This document shows, piece after piece, positions 12,558 through 47,445 of a stretch of DNA of 64,000 bases. Location of the stretch: sequence record PV158447.1; one strand, 5' to 3'. The notes under the pieces are model-generated. The model saw only the letters and a program-made list of their open reading frames with translations. It was not told the origin of the DNA and searched no databases. Numbering within the stretch: position 1 is the stretch's first letter; each line of letters starts with the position of its first letter. Position numbers and translations under genes: made by a program.

Positions 12558-12595
12558 ATTCTTTTTGTTTGTACATAAAAATAAAGATCTATATT

Positions 12596-15450: not shown

Positions 15451-17976
15451 ATGTCATCAGGTCGTGTCATCCAGCCTCGTTCTCAACAAATGGGCGGAAT
15501 GAATAATCAAGTACAACAGAACCAACCTGGAATGCAACAGGGGCAGATCCCTGGGCAGCAACAGTATGGGAATCAACCCACTCCCGGTAGTCAGGCAGTC
15601 GGTGCCATCAGGAACCTAGCCGGAATCGCAAAACGTGGAGTAGCGGCCCAAGGTCAAGGTGGTGGTTGGGGGTTTTCCCACGAACGTCACAATACCTCGT
15701 TAACAGGAGAATTTGGTAAGTTTAAAGAAGACCTCATGACAGATGAAATGCTTCGTGGAGAGTATTTCACTTACGCATCAGAATTGGGTGCAATGGCCAT
15801 GCAAGCCATTGTTCGACGAAATGATCGGGGTGGATTTTACGGAGCGTTCCTTTCTGGATTGGAATTGGTGAAATCAGGTAACCCAAATATGCCTGGTCAA
15901 GTAGAACCTATCCGCGAGGAATTCTACAAGGAAATCCAGTGTAACGCCAGCATTTACCAGCATATTCTCTCCAACACAATTATTCAAGTTGTCGGTGATT
16001 TGACTGGGATGCAAACACAAGGTCGGCATATCACTCAGGATGGCAGTGATCTTCGTCGACTGCTGACCGAGTGTGCTGGCGTTTGTGCTTGGTTCATGTT
16101 GGTTGAGTACATTCTCTCTCACCCACAGTCTGCTAACGTCATTGGTAGTTTGACTCCGTTCACTCGTAAGTACTTGAGTAATCTGGAAATGTATTATGGC
16201 ATTTTCAAAGCCCGATATGAACAAGTGGATGACGCTCAAATTCCCTGGAACATCTCCAGAGTAAGTGAGATCTTGAAGGGACCGTCAATCGTTAACCCAC
16301 TGCTGGATCCCAACCTTTGGCTAGACCCTCATTCCAATATTTCCGTTCAAACCGCCAATCAACATCGTGTAGATGGCGGCCTTGATCTGCTAGGTCAACT
16401 TCCTGGCGGAACGGGCATTGGTTATGGTCAGCCTAGCGCCCCTAAAAGCGAGCTGGATGCGTTTTGTGAGCGTCTGATGCTTGAGGCAAGGGAAGCTAGG
16501 GAGAAAGAGGAGAGGGCTGCTAGAGGTGATTACATGGCGAATGGCGGGATGTCCCACGGACCTGCTTTCACCGATGTTGACCGTCAGATCCCTTCCTTGG
16601 AGAAATTCTCCTGGGAAAATGCCCAGTACTTTGATCTGAATGATTACCTCATTAAGATCCCGAATAGCAAATACTCAGTGATGACGATTGAGAATGCTGC
16701 CGCTCTGATCACTCATTTCCGTTTTAGAAACACCAACCGGATGTGTTCCACCGTTGATGTAATGGGTCAGTCTGCTGAAGATGTACCAATTTTCCATTTT
16801 AATATGGAAACTCGGCAAGCTGACATTCGTTATGTTCATATGTCCTTTGAGGAGCACGGATACAGTATGTACGATAAAGTGTTGAGTAATCCTGATCTCT
16901 TACTTCCTTATATGTGGGAAGAAGATGGACAGGTTATTACCAACTGGCAGCCTCGGCCTGTCACTACCGATAGTCTCATTGGAGAAGAAAATAATCTCAA
17001 ACCTCTCTCCCCAATGGTTCCATTGGAAGAACGTCCGAACATGCTCTTTGGTAATAAGTGTGTCACATTTAGTGAAGATGATGTGATGCTGAATAAGGTA
17101 GATTCTTATACCAAAACCTTCGATCCGAAAGGGACGTTAGATGCGTTTGTACTACCGGTAAAAATGGTCGGTAACTTGACTGTTGACCCAAGTTTTAATA
17201 TCAAGGATCATTACGAAGAAATAGAATCTATCTTCAATCCCGACAATGCCCGTGAACACGGCGACTTCTTCAATACACTTCGTATCGTAGAACGTTTCCT
17301 GAAATCTTCCCGTAATGCCCCGCTGGGTGGATTTATTACCCAGCACATCACCACTGTGGTTAACCGTTGGTTGATTGAAGCTCGCGGATATAACGAACTG
17401 GGTACCGGCAAACAGTGTTTGCACCTGGAAAACATTTTCCAGGACCTGGACCAGTTCAAAGAACATCTGATGAACAAGGATCAACCGACACTCATCAGTT
17501 TCCTGAAAGGAGGGAGTCGTTCCACTCTGTATCGCGAGATTCGTATCTTCGCTAGTCAAGAGAAAGCAAAGGAATACTTCACCAAGAACGTTGATAAAGA
17601 CGATCCGGTAGAAGTCGCCGCCGCCGAGAATATGGTAAATACTGACCTGCTCCTGACCTCTGATGCAATTGTTATTCAACTGCGTAAAGAGTACGGACCT
17701 GTTAGTGAAGGTACCGTCAGAGTGGAGGAATCTCGTAATCCTAAACTCTTTGCTATTATCCGGCAAGCACTGGAAACCACCAAGAAACATTTCAACAAGG
17801 AACCTGCTATCTTGCTTGTTCATGAGAAGTCGACTGGTGCAAGAGTACGCTCTGTTAAGTTCTCTGAATTTGATGACAGTGTACTTTCCATGAGGGCATT
17901 GGATAAGTCCTGTGGGCTACTGCTGGGGGTTCCTGTGGCGCTACCAGAAACCATTGATCACATTCGACAGCGATAA
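15451..17976 (+). CDS. large conserved hypothetical protein with Q/G/N-rich N-terminus
   Basis: 841-aa ORF; AGGAG RBS; co-transcribed after the RNAP subunit. Confidence 0.7.
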   Translation: MSSGRVIQPRSQQMGGMNNQVQQNQPGMQQGQIPGQQQYGNQPTPGSQAVGAIRNLAGIAKRGVAAQGQGGGWGFSHERHNTSLTGEFGKFKEDLMTDEMLRGEYFTYASELGAMAMQAIVRRNDRGGFYGAFLSGLELVKSGNPNMPGQVEPIREEFYKEIQCNASIYQHILSNTIIQVVGDLTGMQTQGRHITQDGSDLRRLLTECAGVCAWFMLVEYILSHPQSANVIGSLTPFTRKYLSNLEMYYGIFKARYEQVDDAQIPWNISRVSEILKGPSIVNPLLDPNLWLDPHSNISVQTANQHRVDGGLDLLGQLPGGTGIGYGQPSAPKSELDAFCERLMLEAREAREKEERAARGDYMANGGMSHGPAFTDVDRQIPSLEKFSWENAQYFDLNDYLIKIPNSKYSVMTIENAAALITHFRFRNTNRMCSTVDVMGQSAEDVPIFHFNMETRQADIRYVHMSFEEHGYSMYDKVLSNPDLLLPYMWEEDGQVITNWQPRPVTTDSLIGEENNLKPLSPMVPLEERPNMLFGNKCVTFSEDDVMLNKVDSYTKTFDPKGTLDAFVLPVKMVGNLTVDPSFNIKDHYEEIESIFNPDNAREHGDFFNTLRIVERFLKSSRNAPLGGFITQHITTVVNRWLIEARGYNELGTGKQCLHLENIFQDLDQFKEHLMNKDQPTLISFLKGGSRSTLYREIRIFASQEKAKEYFTKNVDKDDPVEVAAAENMVNTDLLLTSDAIVIQLRKEYGPVSEGTVRVEESRNPKLFAIIRQALETTKKHFNKEPAILLVHEKSTGARVRSVKFSEFDDSVLSMRALDKSCGLLLGVPVALPETIDHIRQR

Positions 17977-17991
17977 CAACTAACACTGAGA

Positions 17992-18025
17992 AGGAGACTC
18001 TAACCCAAACGGGTTAGAGTCTCCT
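17992..18025 (+). terminator. terminator-like hairpin
   Basis: aggagactctaaccc-aaac-gggttagagtctcct, perfect 15-bp stem. Confidence 0.8.
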
Positions 18026-18165
18026 CATTCTCTCTGTAATCGTTTTGTAGAGATTCTTGATATCAATGTGATAAACTAGACTAATAAGATAAAGAAATCG
18101 TTTATAGCGTTTCCTATAGCCCTTGAACTGGCTGTAGAAAACCAAATACATTTAATATCCATAAT

Positions 18166-18183
18166 TTTTCAAACCTATATTAC
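18166..18183 (+). promoter_or_regulatory. putative early promoter
   Basis: TTTTCAAACCTATATTAC; contains TATATTAC, the published phiKZ early promoter core. Confidence 0.7.
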
Positions 18184-18246
18184 TAAAGTGATAAACATAG
18201 ATAGTTTATCTAAACCATTTAATTAATTTAGGAAAAGGGAAATATC

Positions 18247-18636
18247 ATGGAAACTGTAACTCAACAACTGCCCGTAGTAAATGACCACGGTGATCTGTTC
18301 CTGGAGAACTCCCGGACTCGCAACGCCATCTATGGTGCGATCGGCGGTCTGGTAACTGCCGGTTCTCTGGCCCTGGAATCTGATCTGTCCAACCGTGACA
18401 TCCTGGTCAACATGGCGGCCGGTGCCGTAGCAGGCGGGGCCGTAGCCTCCCTGATCAAAGGTGTCCCCAGTTTCGGCGGGCTTGGTACTGCCTATGCCGT
18501 GAGCGTTGGTGTCGGTTCTGCACTGATCCTGACCCGTCCTCTGATTCTGGGTCTGAACAAGGTCGTCGATGTTTTCAACACCGATGAAGTAAATGACGAA
18601 GCATTCCCGGAAGTAGAAGATCTTCCGACCGTTTAA
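18247..18636 (+). CDS. glycine-zipper membrane protein (paralog A)
   Basis: Three Gly/Ala-rich hydrophobic helices (GAIGGLVTAG, AAGAVAGGAVA, GVGSALIL); highly expressed codon bias; strong RBS. Confidence 0.75.
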   Translation: METVTQQLPVVNDHGDLFLENSRTRNAIYGAIGGLVTAGSLALESDLSNRDILVNMAAGAVAGGAVASLIKGVPSFGGLGTAYAVSVGVGSALILTRPLILGLNKVVDVFNTDEVNDEAFPEVEDLPTV

Positions 18637-18691
18637 ACAACATCGCCATTGAGTAGGATTATTCCTACGGTTAATTTAGGAGAATAATAAC

Positions 18692-19447
18692 ATGTCAGAC
18701 GTAATCCTGCTCGATAAAGAATTTAAAGATCTTAACACCGAAGGTATGATGCAGTCCCTGGTGACGGGTGCTGGCAAATATCTGTATTTCCGTGATCTCG
18801 GTCATGGATACCGTGTTGTCAAGAAGCTGACTGGGCACGATAACCAGGAAGCGTATGTGAAGGTTCCCAAGATGCTCTTTATCGAGAGCGGGTTCTTTCG
18901 CGAAACCCTCGCCAAAGATGGCGTAACCCAAACTGTAGTTAATAACTTCGTTAACCAAATCAAGAAGGAAAGTAAAATGGAAATCACTAACAAAGAAGCT
19001 CTGAGCAACGAAAACGCCGCTCCTGTAGAAACCGCTGAAGTGGTAACTCCGGTAGAACAAGCACAACCCGCCCTGCCGATAATCTCTGACGATTCTGACG
19101 AGCTGCTGGGTTGTTCCCGGAACCGCATGATCGCCGTGGGTGGTGTAGCCGCCCTGGTTACCTCCGTGGCTCAGAGTCTGCTCGGTGGCGCAGGTGGTGT
19201 TCGGACTGGTGCCAATGCTGTTGTCTCTACTCTGGGTGGAGCGGCAGTTGGTTATGTTACAGATAAAGCGTTTGAAGGGGCCCCTGCGTACCTGACCGCA
19301 CTCGGGCTGGGTTCCGCTGTAGGCTCCATGGTCACCATGGGTTCTAACGTATTTTTCCCGAAAGCCAAAGAAGTGGAAGAACAAGAATGGACTGGTGAAA
19401 TGGATTATTCCATGATGCCAGTTCAACCTGAACTGCCTGCCGTATAA
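18692..19447 (+). CDS. glycine-zipper membrane protein (paralog B) with soluble N-terminal extension
   Basis: AGGAG RBS; C-terminal half aligns by eye to paralog A; three hydrophobic Gly-rich helices. Confidence 0.75.
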   Translation: MSDVILLDKEFKDLNTEGMMQSLVTGAGKYLYFRDLGHGYRVVKKLTGHDNQEAYVKVPKMLFIESGFFRETLAKDGVTQTVVNNFVNQIKKESKMEITNKEALSNENAAPVETAEVVTPVEQAQPALPIISDDSDELLGCSRNRMIAVGGVAALVTSVAQSLLGGAGGVRTGANAVVSTLGGAAVGYVTDKAFEGAPAYLTALGLGSAVGSMVTMGSNVFFPKAKEVEEQEWTGEMDYSMMPVQPELPAV

Positions 19448-19460
19448 CAAATAAGATAAA

Positions 19461-19486
19461 CCTACTCTCCCAATTGGGAGAGTAGG
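19461..19486. terminator. bidirectional terminator hairpin (CT-rich family)
   Basis: cctactctccc-aatt-gggagagtagg between convergent genes. Confidence 0.8.
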
Positions 19487-19516
19487 TTCTTATTACGATA
19501 CTATTTTATTTTTGGT

Positions 19517-25725: not shown

Positions 25726-26352
25726 ATGAGTATTAACGTTCCAACCTCCAACGAGTCTCGACTCTTTCTTCCCTTGAATGTCGGGGAGAGTACACTCTCC
25801 CTTATCCCTCGGATTGCCATTGTTCATAACGCCAAACTTGACCCCTCCCTCTATGAGGACAGTTCCGTTTACTTGACTGACAATGGTGAACTCAGAGTGG
25901 ATCTAGTAAACCTACACACGGGACTCGTTGATTACGCTTTCACCAATGGTAAAACAAGTGTCGGATTAGTCAAGGGGGAAACTCCATACTTCCCCCACCC
26001 CAAGTCTGGGCAATACCCAGAAATAGAAAAGAATCTCCAAGTTGTCATTAACACCAAATGCGAACTTCGTTTTCTGAACGATATGACTGTAGGGACAATT
26101 GACGACACAGGGAATCTTTCTTCTGAGCGCGCTCGTCATCTGGCTCAGCTCTTGAATCGTTACCAACTCGGTGACGGCTGGAGTTGTAATCCAGGTAGAG
26201 GAAATACCACAGCGTTTTTCAAGTTACTTTATCTAGGTGACATGAAAGACATGCCCGATGAATTTAAGATCAACCACAATACTCCCTACGGAGCTGTTGT
26301 AGAGTTGACGACTCCGACAGGGCCTGCGGTTTATTGTTTAGCAGTGGGATAA
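25726..26352 (+). CDS. putative virion/tail-associated protein
   Basis: AAGGAGG RBS; C-terminal LAQLLNRYQLGDGW...LLYLG resembles phiKZ-type fibre terminal domains (recalled). Confidence 0.45.
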   Translation: MSINVPTSNESRLFLPLNVGESTLSLIPRIAIVHNAKLDPSLYEDSSVYLTDNGELRVDLVNLHTGLVDYAFTNGKTSVGLVKGETPYFPHPKSGQYPEIEKNLQVVINTKCELRFLNDMTVGTIDDTGNLSSERARHLAQLLNRYQLGDGWSCNPGRGNTTAFFKLLYLGDMKDMPDEFKINHNTPYGAVVELTTPTGPAVYCLAVG

Positions 26353-26356
26353 AGAA

Positions 26357-26944
26357 ATGCTAAAAATTATGGGAATAGACCCAGGGATCAATAACCTGGG
26401 ACTGGCTGCATTAGAGTTGTCTGTTCATGAAACCAAGCCGTTCAAGTTGGTTTATGCAGACACTATCCATGGTGTACATAACGAGTACGGAATGGTTGAT
26501 GACGGTCAGAAATCGTTAGCGGCAGAAGGATTGACCAGAGCCTACAGTCAAGCACTGAAAGTCATTGATCCTGATTTCGTTGGATGTGAAGATAACTTCC
26601 TTGGGTTGAGCGCTGCGTCTTTTAAACGACTGATCGAAGTTGTTTCTTACTTCCGCATTCATACATTGGAAAGTGATCGATGTGTTTGGTTTAAACTGGT
26701 ATTACCAAGATTGGCCAAACAGATTGTGGGAGCTGACTTCCGAGGTTCTGGTAAAGACGATGTAACGAAGGGATTGAAAGCTTGTCCTTTCCTAGATCTT
26801 AACGGCTTCGATCTGGATCAACTCTCTGAACACGCCAACGACGCTATCTTGATTGCACTCTACTTTGCAGTGCTCTATTACAAAGACCTGGGTCGGGACG
26901 TGTTGAATGGGACAGATAAAGATGGGATCGGGAAGGTGGGTTGA
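26357..26944 (+). CDS. ruvC: RuvC-like Holliday junction resolvase
   Basis: IMGIDPGINNLG, CEDNF and HANDAILIA catalytic motifs. Confidence 0.9.
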   Translation: MLKIMGIDPGINNLGLAALELSVHETKPFKLVYADTIHGVHNEYGMVDDGQKSLAAEGLTRAYSQALKVIDPDFVGCEDNFLGLSAASFKRLIEVVSYFRIHTLESDRCVWFKLVLPRLAKQIVGADFRGSGKDDVTKGLKACPFLDLNGFDLDQLSEHANDAILIALYFAVLYYKDLGRDVLNGTDKDGIGKVG

Positions 26945-46485: not shown

Positions 46486-46596
46486 TTAGATACCAAACGG
46501 TATCTTTCTATGTATTTTATGTCCAGAACCGTTATACTCCCTTACAGGAGTGTAACCTGGATTCCCATCCACCGTTGATTTATAGGGATCTATAAA

Positions 46597-46614
46597 TTTT
46601 CAGATAGATATTAT
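46597..46614 (+). promoter_or_regulatory. putative early promoter
   Basis: TTTTCAGATAGATATTAT (17/18). Confidence 0.75.
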
Positions 46615-46671
46615 CTTAATGTGCAAGTAGGAGTGATTTGTACATTACCCAACTACTCTAGGAGTGACATC

Positions 46672-47445
46672 ATGTTTAAGACGTTCCTCATGACTCTCGT
46701 ACTGATGGTACTGAGTCTGACCCACGCCGTAGCACAAGCTGCCACCTATACCGACCACGACAAATCCGTTATGTTGAATCGTTTCGATACTGTTGCTGAT
46801 GAGTTGTACGAGGCCAGTGTTCGAACGGGAATCAATATGGCCGAGTTGACGGCGATTGCATCGTTGGAATCCAAGTTGCAACATACTGTCCATAATAAAT
46901 CTGGTTATACTACCGCAAAGGGGATGCTCCAATATACGAATCGTACGTGGAAAGTAAAGCGAGACGAGTACGCTCAAGCACTCGGTATTCCATCCAATGC
47001 GCACCAATACAACCTTCGTGCCAACCTGCTCATTGGAAGTAAAGACCTTCAGGACATAAAAGAATTCCTGGTTGAGAACACACACGTCGAAACGCACAAT
47101 CTTCGGTTAGGTGATGTATACATGGCGCACTTCCTTGGTGAAAATGGAGCAATGCGATTACTCAATTCGTATTCCCATAAACCGATGAACCAGATTGTTA
47201 AAATCCATCCTGGTAATAAACGCTACTACTACAAGCCTAATGGCCAAATTCGTACTGCTCGAGAGTTTCGTAATTTCATGGACGAGATTGCTAAACGAGA
47301 GGCGAAGGTTTACGAACAAGCAATCATGGAATATCAAGTAGCAAAACTGTTTAAACCATTCAACGATATTTACGATGCGTTTAAACAACCGAGTTCCACC
47401 ATGCTCGCTATTCGAGAAAGTATGGTCCCTCAGGATTTCGGTTAA
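46672..47445 (+). CDS. lytic transglycosylase (SLT/phiKZ gp144-like catalytic domain) with Sec signal peptide; start 46672
   Basis: AGGAG RBS; MFKTFLMTLVLMVLSLTHAVAQA signal; catalytic IASLES, AKGMLQYT, VYMAHFLGENGA. Confidence 0.85.
   Translation: MFKTFLMTLVLMVLSLTHAVAQAATYTDHDKSVMLNRFDTVADELYEASVRTGINMAELTAIASLESKLQHTVHNKSGYTTAKGMLQYTNRTWKVKRDEYAQALGIPSNAHQYNLRANLLIGSKDLQDIKEFLVENTHVETHNLRLGDVYMAHFLGENGAMRLLNSYSHKPMNQIVKIHPGNKRYYYKPNGQIRTAREFRNFMDEIAKREAKVYEQAIMEYQVAKLFKPFNDIYDAFKQPSSTMLAIRESMVPQDFG

Follow-up and report, generated by a model that had tools for sequence, protein, structure and literature searches.

Two adjacent genes of the Aeromonas phage AhC3_1, gene A (open reading frame (ORF) 192) and gene B (ORF193), are predicted to encode, together with the paralogous gene ORF40, an undescribed family of the OBP-like Chimalliviridae branch: small proteins with three helices, rich in Gly and Ala. 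The chances are slightly better than even that the three proteins form an abundant, early, membrane-inserted family which acts at the inner membrane or at the vesicle of early phage infection (EPI vesicle). A and B are located in the last 64 kb of the phage genome (PV158447.1, 232,884 bp). This stretch is referred to as the window, and a window coordinate equals the record coordinate minus 168,884. AhC3_1 is a nucleus-forming jumbo phage of the chimallivirus type that carries a gene for the chimallin shell and RNA polymerase genes in split form, and its nearest deposited relatives share only about 35% protein sequence identity with it. Both genes are annotated as hypothetical only, and their ORFs are not mentioned in the AhC3_1 genome paper.

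A and B are real genes under purifying selection. According to the codon model, their coding potential in the annotated frame is 0.41-0.44 bits per codon, compared with a genome median of 0.28, and the other frames score lower. In a diverged natural relative from a biofilm metagenome, 11 differences are listed for gene A. Nine of them are synonymous, and the remaining two share one codon, resulting in a single replacement (T3N). At least two diverged strains cover gene B in the biofilm metagenome, with 1 and 34 differences, respectively, over about 250 nt. A preliminary description of the window had regarded A and B as a self-contained early operon of two paralogous glycine-zipper membrane proteins; the ORFs, the quoted strings and the protein ends EDLPTV and PELPAV were all found in the translations at the coordinates given. 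The unit consists of the following features (window coordinates):

17992-18025, plus strand: upstream hairpin (15 bp, 8 G-C), which closes the ORF189-191 operon and marks the left boundary of the A/B unit
18145-18192, plus strand: early-class promoter element (48 nt) with the core TATATTAC at 18176-18183, forming a near-identical subclass with the elements of ORF40 and ORF136
18190-18210, plus strand: predicted 5' leader stem-loop, GATAAAC-N7-GTTTATC, directly 3' of the promoter
18247-18636, plus strand: gene A (ORF192), 129 aa, with a short N-terminus, three Gly/Ala-rich helices and an acidic tail
18653-18668, plus strand: small, weak inter-cistronic hairpin between A and B
18692-19447, plus strand: gene B (ORF193), 251 aa, with a strong TAGGAG Shine-Dalgarno sequence at 18677-18682
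18692-18976, plus strand: N-terminal extension of B (95 aa), orphan, basic and soluble-looking
18965-18972, plus strand: internal Shine-Dalgarno sequence AAGGAAAG in B, which precedes the in-frame ATG of the family module (site 18965-18979)
18977-19447, plus strand: family module of B, starting at residue 96
19458-19489, no strand assigned: downstream hairpin (14 bp), shared with the convergent portal gene as a bidirectional terminator and marking the right boundary of the unit

A family of three paralogues

The paralogy of A and B is borne out by the alignments. A aligns with residues 121-251 of B at 25% identity (BLASTP, E 1e-6), and A, B and ORF40 find one another reciprocally when searched with phmmer against all six-frame ORFs of the genome (E 1e-3 to 2e-6). 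The same search found no other paralogue in AhC3_1, even at E<=10. The term "self-contained pair" holds insofar as the unit is bounded by hairpins and has its own promoter. It is nonetheless incomplete, because a third paralogue exists and B carries an additional orphan domain.

ORF40 lies outside the window (record coordinates 26369-26803, or 26266-26803 with its promoter). It encodes 144 aa behind a near-identical 48-nt promoter. Orthologues with 34-45% identity were found in CF8, AerS_266, ZPAH34, Kc263 and the Serratia phages Yubaba and Sureiya, directly 3' of promoter matches that were first met as megablast matches. Their context is fixed in all four fetched loci (CF8, AerS_266, Kc263 and Yubaba), where GroEL, two small genes and thymidine kinase are followed by the ORF40-like gene and a gene for a protein of about 250 aa. 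A further 15 members of this branch were recovered, several of them on contigs of 170-260 kb. The branch is strongly conserved in a Glu in helix 1, an SPTG turn, the motif APQ, an Arg in helix 3 and the motif YFPGN. ORF40 is the better-conserved paralogue compared with A and B. One ORF40-type member is labelled Escherichia coli and is located on a 260-kb contig, which points to a jumbo-phage genome that went unrecognised in a bacterial assembly.

When sets of 5.8 billion and 1.84 billion proteins were searched, no more than about 25 family members were found in all. No match for A or B was found in Pfam, PHROGs, NCBIfam or PADLOC. For instance, hmmscan against Pfam returned nothing for A at E<=0.1 and, for B, sub-threshold matches to unrelated models only. 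Likewise, NCBIfam, PADLOC and three atlas searches gave sub-threshold leads only. The earlier impression that the proteins belong to no named family was confirmed, as no curated family, solved structure or fold search gave a significant match.

The architecture of B differs from that of A by the N-terminal extension, for which no relatives were found in profile-library, database and atlas searches. A mis-annotated start was considered as an explanation and ruled out. The first 95 codons have a coding potential of 0.42 bits per codon in frame, with lower values in the other frames, and because of this high in-frame potential the extension is taken as genuine coding sequence. The family module behind it starts with MEITNKEA, comparable to the N-terminus MENTNKEA of CF8_0120. 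The internal Shine-Dalgarno sequence makes a second start in B possible, which would give a short isoform besides the 251-aa form. As the start of the module resembles that of the CF8 protein and the module has an internal Shine-Dalgarno sequence in front, B appears to be the orthologue of the single gene found at this position in relatives, having gained an orphan 95-aa N-terminal domain, while A would be an additional copy.

An early-type promoter and strong boundaries

The bare core TATATTAC was dropped as promoter evidence. With one occurrence in the window and 1.25 expected, its count is at chance level; the core by itself proves nothing, and the 48-nt element was therefore used instead. 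With a position matrix, 25 copies of this element were detected in the genome, all on the plus strand, and none in shuffled genomes. The copies precede the chimallin gene, annotated non-virion RNA polymerase (nvRNAP) subunit genes, the ORF189-191 operon and stretches made up of many small genes. The genome-wide matrix scan found no copy before the capsid, sheath, portal or terminase genes of AhC3_1.

The element agrees with the published "early promoter" consensus of OBP and N1M2 and with the early motif of phiKZ. It also agrees with the sequence upstream of phiKZ gp241. Its consensus (TTTCARRYAKATATTATYWAAGTG / TATATTAC), its multiple intergenic and co-oriented copies and its position upstream of known early genes assign it, as a prediction, to the early promoter class of chimalliviruses, which is the class of the virion RNA polymerase. 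At the syntenic position the element is invariant across five genera, while the remaining spacer is unalignable. In the diverged biofilm relative, the adjacent spacer is about 14% diverged and the promoter differs by one change, toward the class consensus. In the same metagenome, the contig depth rises about 25-fold over the promoter (18128-18184); this spike fits a multi-copy element common to several co-occurring related phages.

Directly behind the promoter, the leader stem-loop has a z-score of -2.4 in AhC3_1 and of -2.3 to -5.9 in the corresponding genes of CF8, ZPAH34, PS1 and pEt-SU. Its arms are kept in the relatives and its loops vary. The stem-loop may be an mRNA-stabilising element. 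Similar hairpins were seen in ORF40-type leaders. Altogether, the claim that the unit has its own early promoter and terminator is well supported at the sequence level by the 25-copy element, the match to the consensus and the strong flanking hairpins.

Codon adaptation

The codon adaptation index (CAI) was calculated with the capsid and sheath genes as the reference set. A reaches the 95th and B the 93rd percentile of the genome, so that the capsid-like codon bias noted earlier can be put in figures: both are within the top 5-7% of genes. ORF40 ranks third in the genome, behind capsid and chimallin. From promoter class and codon usage we infer that A and B are abundant and early proteins.

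Predicted fold and membrane character

Three charge-free stretches of 15-28 residues occur in every family member, with Kyte-Doolittle means of about 1.1-2.3. Membrane insertion of A, B and ORF40 is plausible on these grounds, not assured. An AlphaFold model built from a 21-sequence alignment places helices at residues 22-44 and 49-69 (pLDDT 70-76) and a third helix at 78-111, between disordered termini. An earlier model, made from a shallow alignment, could not be used (pLDDT 42.6). Basic residues flank helix 1 (Arg/Lys before it) and follow helix 2, with acidic ones in loop 1 and the tail. This charge pattern is weakly consistent with a topology in which the N-terminus is inside and the C-terminus outside. 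No signal peptide was found in A or B.

The preliminary description had seen three GxxxG-rich helices and had drawn on glycine zippers as drivers of membrane oligomers and pores. The three helices are predicted by AlphaFold as well; GxxxG is no commoner than composition gives. Strict GxxxG occurs twice in A (2.2 expected) and four times in B, which is not above shuffled composition. Canonical zippers, scored as (G/A/S)xxxGxxxG or GxxxGxxx(G/S/T), are absent from A and number four in B (1.5 expected, P 0.07) and two in ORF40 (0.8 expected, P 0.2). The looser pattern of three small residues at this spacing is only marginal for A and ORF40 (P 0.06-0.09), and the GxxxG and zipper tests range overall from P 0.07 to 1.0. 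Since there is no enrichment over composition, "glycine zipper" describes the composition and not a demonstrated motif, and the assignment to this class had to be given up; the helices are simply rich in Gly, Ala, Ser and Val.

Fold searches and AlphaFold modelling, which had been proposed as a check, were run on single chains and gave three helices and no significant fold relative. In PDB, AlphaFold-DB and viral fold searches, no match reached E<=0.001 and TM-scores were mostly below 0.5. The top of these non-significant lists is rich in three-helix proteins annotated "Holin" and in small proteins of other chimalliviruses, including the N1M2 protein encoded at the position of A and B. In language-model feature space, the nearest named clusters are MamC (PF26373) and Gly-zipper_Omp (PF13488), which are likewise small with Gly/Ala-rich hydrophobic helices, and MamC resides in an intracellular vesicle membrane. 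Their scores of 0.78-0.81 are, however, below the tool's chance level (0.9), and hmmscan against Pfam gave no match.

The gene slot before the portal gene

The pair was initially described as inserted between core genes. This could not be upheld for the OBP-like clade. In CF8, ZPAH34, PS1, Kc263, OBP, N1M2, pEt-SU and D3, the last gene before the convergent portal gene (the slot gene) encodes a protein built like A and B: a polar, acidic N-region is followed by hydrophobic segments rich in Gly and Ala and by an acidic tail. A slot protein of the same build is found in four uncultivated genomes of 260-271 kb. The promoter core is visible 5' of the slot gene in most genomes examined. Because the portal-side slot is occupied in every relative examined, the A/B pair is not an insertion.

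The build is shared more widely than the sequence. The AhC3_1 trio and the CF8/ZPAH34 group match reciprocally with 12-20 bits, above all 1,800 shuffled decoys. The slot proteins of OBP, N1M2, Kc263 and the uncultivated genomes group into a second solid family, and those of pEt-SU and D3 are sequence orphans. No links between the slot-protein groups were detected. A single sequence family across the whole clade was considered and rejected, with an hhalign probability of 0.4% and cross-group scores below those of shuffled decoys. OBP_131, N1M2_104 and Kc263 QYN79965 resemble A and B in their build and in their place before the convergent portal gene. The Kc263 and OBP genes have a dedicated promoter core 5' of them, and none was found 5' of N1M2_104. 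They differ from the AhC3_1/CF8 group in that no sequence homology to it is detectable. Judged by sequence comparison, they are positional analogues of A and B, and shared ancestry is not demonstrable.

In phiKZ, the gene at the slot (gp125) is unrelated and soluble-looking, and was discarded as a counterpart. Among the matches listed when 1.84 and 5.8 billion proteins were searched with the family profile, no phiKZ protein was identified. Single-query searches of IMG/VR with A, B or the portal protein returned no close relatives; loci were retrieved only by portal alignment.

Neighbouring genes and known early proteins

Upstream of A, the ORF189-191 operon encodes a gp122-like protein, an nvRNAP subunit and a protein at the position of JADA. 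The last of these genes and the lytic transglycosylase gene, which is 28 kb away from the unit, bear on the interpretation of A and B:

15451-17976: ORF191, 841 aa, with a Q/G/P-rich N-terminal third, directly 3' of the nvRNAP subunit gene
46576-47445: gp144-like lytic transglycosylase with an N-terminal segment MFKTFLMTLVLMVLSLTHAVAQA resembling a signal or signal-arrest-release (SAR) sequence, located behind a copy of the "early" promoter class

JADA (phiKZ gp124), an essential early protein that is abundant and localises to the EPI vesicle, is a trigger of Avs5, and its gene has an invariant position directly after the nvRNAP subunit gene. ORF191 shares this position. As a JADA orthologue it was tried and rejected: phmmer and a nine-sequence profile against PDB found nothing, and hhalign against phiKZ gp124 gave a probability of 1.2%.

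The EPI vesicle originates from the inner membrane, and its surface bears polysomes, so an early membrane protein could insert there. A protein with demonstrated localisation is phiKZ gp241, an early protein at the EPI vesicle which is sensed by the JukA defence sensor. It has 109 aa, with one Gly-rich N-terminal transmembrane helix and a soluble C-terminal domain, whereas A and B have three hydrophobic helices and acidic ends. The gene for gp241 and the A/B unit, both of chimalliviruses, nevertheless share a cassette made up of a terminator hairpin, a TATATTAC early promoter about 50 nt 5' and a short ORF. No sequence similarity between gp241 and A or B is evident by inspection. A gp241-type combination of early promoter and membrane anchor in A and B is plausible, the promoter class being matched and the anchor being plausible. 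In short, gp241 serves as a precedent for a role at the vesicle and the neighbour at the JADA position adds context, and there is no homology behind either link.

Possible functions of A, B and ORF40

A role of A and B in the early phase, at the membrane or the EPI vesicle, and not in lysis is our preferred guess. According to this model, the injected virion RNA polymerase would transcribe A and B into a single early bicistronic mRNA, stabilised by the 5' stem-loop, and the proteins would be made in large amounts within minutes of infection. They would insert into membranes derived from the inner membrane, namely the cytoplasmic membrane and, given its polysomes, the EPI vesicle, with the N-terminus in the cytoplasm and the acidic tail outside. 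Packed via their small-residue faces, they could condition the membrane during the phase from vesicle to nucleus, either as anchors or recruiters of other early proteins or through a change in permeability. A bolder version makes the three paralogues phage-encoded integral membrane constituents of the EPI vesicle in OBP-like chimalliviruses. Polysomes on the vesicle would translate them, they would insert into its membrane, and there they would provide a conduit or docking site which recruits early proteins, such as the JADA-position neighbour, and hands the genome to the nascent nucleus. This version is speculative and unlikely.

Several observations weigh against an early membrane role. In phiKZ, the phage in which the EPI vesicle was characterised, homologues are not detectable and the slot gene gp125 is unrelated, and JADA orthology of the neighbour ORF191 is unproven by sequence and profile searches. 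The hydrophobicity of the segments is marginal, and the approximate insertion energies, which are indicative only, are all positive. The confidence of the structural model is moderate (mean pLDDT 60.7), and neither GxxxG nor zipper motifs are enriched over composition. Moreover, the transglycosylase with its signal peptide also stands behind a copy of the A/B promoter class; the class may thus not be purely early. The early timing and abundance of A and B are themselves what we infer. The "abundant early membrane-remodelling pair" proposed at the outset has kept its early-type promoter and its probable high expression, both read from sequence; membrane association is plausible, and it is here that the marginal hydrophobicity counts against the proposal.

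The transglycosylase also leads to a holin- or pinholin-like timing of lysis, in which A and B, perhaps together with a long and a short version of B, would serve as a set of holin and antiholin, accumulate in the inner membrane, eventually depolarise it and so release the enzyme. The proteins resemble class I holins and glycine-zipper pinholins in size (about 100-140 aa), in their three predicted helices, in their charged tail and in the in-frame second start of B with its own Shine-Dalgarno sequence, which recalls dual-start holins. Proteins of 100-135 aa with three helices and a "Holin" annotation lead the AlphaFold-DB and viral fold lists (probability up to 0.99). In addition, the transglycosylase with its signal/SAR-like segment has no adjoining holin or spanin, and tblastn found no homologue of the phiKZ holin gp142 in the AhC3_1 genome. 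However, no fold match is significant, the model confidence is moderate, and no sequence-family match of A or B to holins was found. Holins are late, dose-timed lethal proteins, whereas A and B have an early-type promoter, as chimallin does, and very high codon adaptation. Their tail is acidic, not basic, and they lie outside any lysis cassette, between the nvRNAP operon and the portal gene. The characterised phiKZ holin gp142, for its part, is a single-transmembrane class III protein inside a spanin-endolysin cassette. A lysis function is considered rather improbable. Small early phage proteins can also act at the inner membrane in superinfection exclusion, as T4 Imm and Sp do. The small size, early-type promoter and membrane-like build of A and B speak for such a role, and as immunity proteins they would block genome entry or EPI-vesicle formation of later phages, whether of their own or of a competing type. 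The fast sequence turnover of the slot gene under a constant architecture and the lineage-specific duplication in AhC3_1 are both typical of conflict-driven genes. Nonetheless, no sequence or profile similarity to T4 Imm, Sp or other known exclusion proteins was found in the libraries searched (Pfam, PHROGs, NCBIfam and PADLOC). The ORF40 branch, moreover, is conserved across genera like a core gene and is apparently extremely highly expressed, which fits a core infection function better. Exclusion is accordingly ranked as unlikely.

Two other explanations do without a membrane. A, B and ORF40 could be helical proteins rich in Ala and Gly, soluble or disordered in part, which act in the cytoplasm or at the nuclear shell, as suggested by the marginal hydrophobicity, the positive insertion energies of all three segments, the lack of zipper enrichment, the low-to-moderate AlphaFold confidence and the missing signal peptide. 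Three consecutive charge-free stretches of 15-28 residues in all of the approximately 25 members would, however, be unusual for a soluble protein. The nearest neighbours in feature space and fold, all of them sub-threshold, are membrane proteins, namely MamC, Gly-zipper_Omp, holins and transporter fragments. A soluble family seems doubtful on balance. Late structural or internal virion proteins encoded beside the portal gene are very improbable. The portal and capsid genes are nearby and the codon usage is capsid-like, but no copy of the promoter class precedes the capsid, sheath, portal or terminase genes, and A and B are convergent with the portal gene, with a terminator hairpin in between. 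The OBP counterpart is annotated as hypothetical only, though its neighbour is annotated as portal, and no match to a virion-protein family was found.

Relevance for infection biology and engineering

A 2026 review of jumbo phages lists among the open questions how RNA, nucleotides and proteins are exchanged between the EPI vesicle and the cytoplasm and in what way the protein nucleus receives the genome. Few membrane proteins encoded by phages are known from the EPI-vesicle stage, and the A/B/ORF40 family offers a concrete set of candidates for these questions. The candidates combine the strongest early-type promoter of AhC3_1 with a codon usage that, in ORF40, is surpassed only by capsid and chimallin, and one branch has been kept in phages of Aeromonas, Kosakonia and Serratia. 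A role as vesicle conduit or docking site, if true, would be a function for which no protein is yet known. If the proteins are instead an exclusion or lysis-timing device, the family would still be new. Furthermore, the cassette of promoter, leader and gene is a compact, well-defined expression unit with which such phages could be engineered.

Other features of the region

Besides the copy in front of gene A, four further copies of the 48-nt element start in the window at 12575, 46576, 51827 and 57136. The copy at 12575 heads the ORF189-191 operon and is located between the capsid gene and the nvRNAP subunit gene. In some relatives, the interval between the JADA-position gene and the slot gene holds another small gene. 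Its product belongs to a conserved family of roughly 140 aa which starts with MKTFTTSIFVP and was found in Kc263, N1M2, pEt-SU and OBP (loci L005:9160-9585, L012:5075-5503, L014:5100-5531 and L011:5118-5345). The family is absent from AhC3_1, and its OBP member is truncated.

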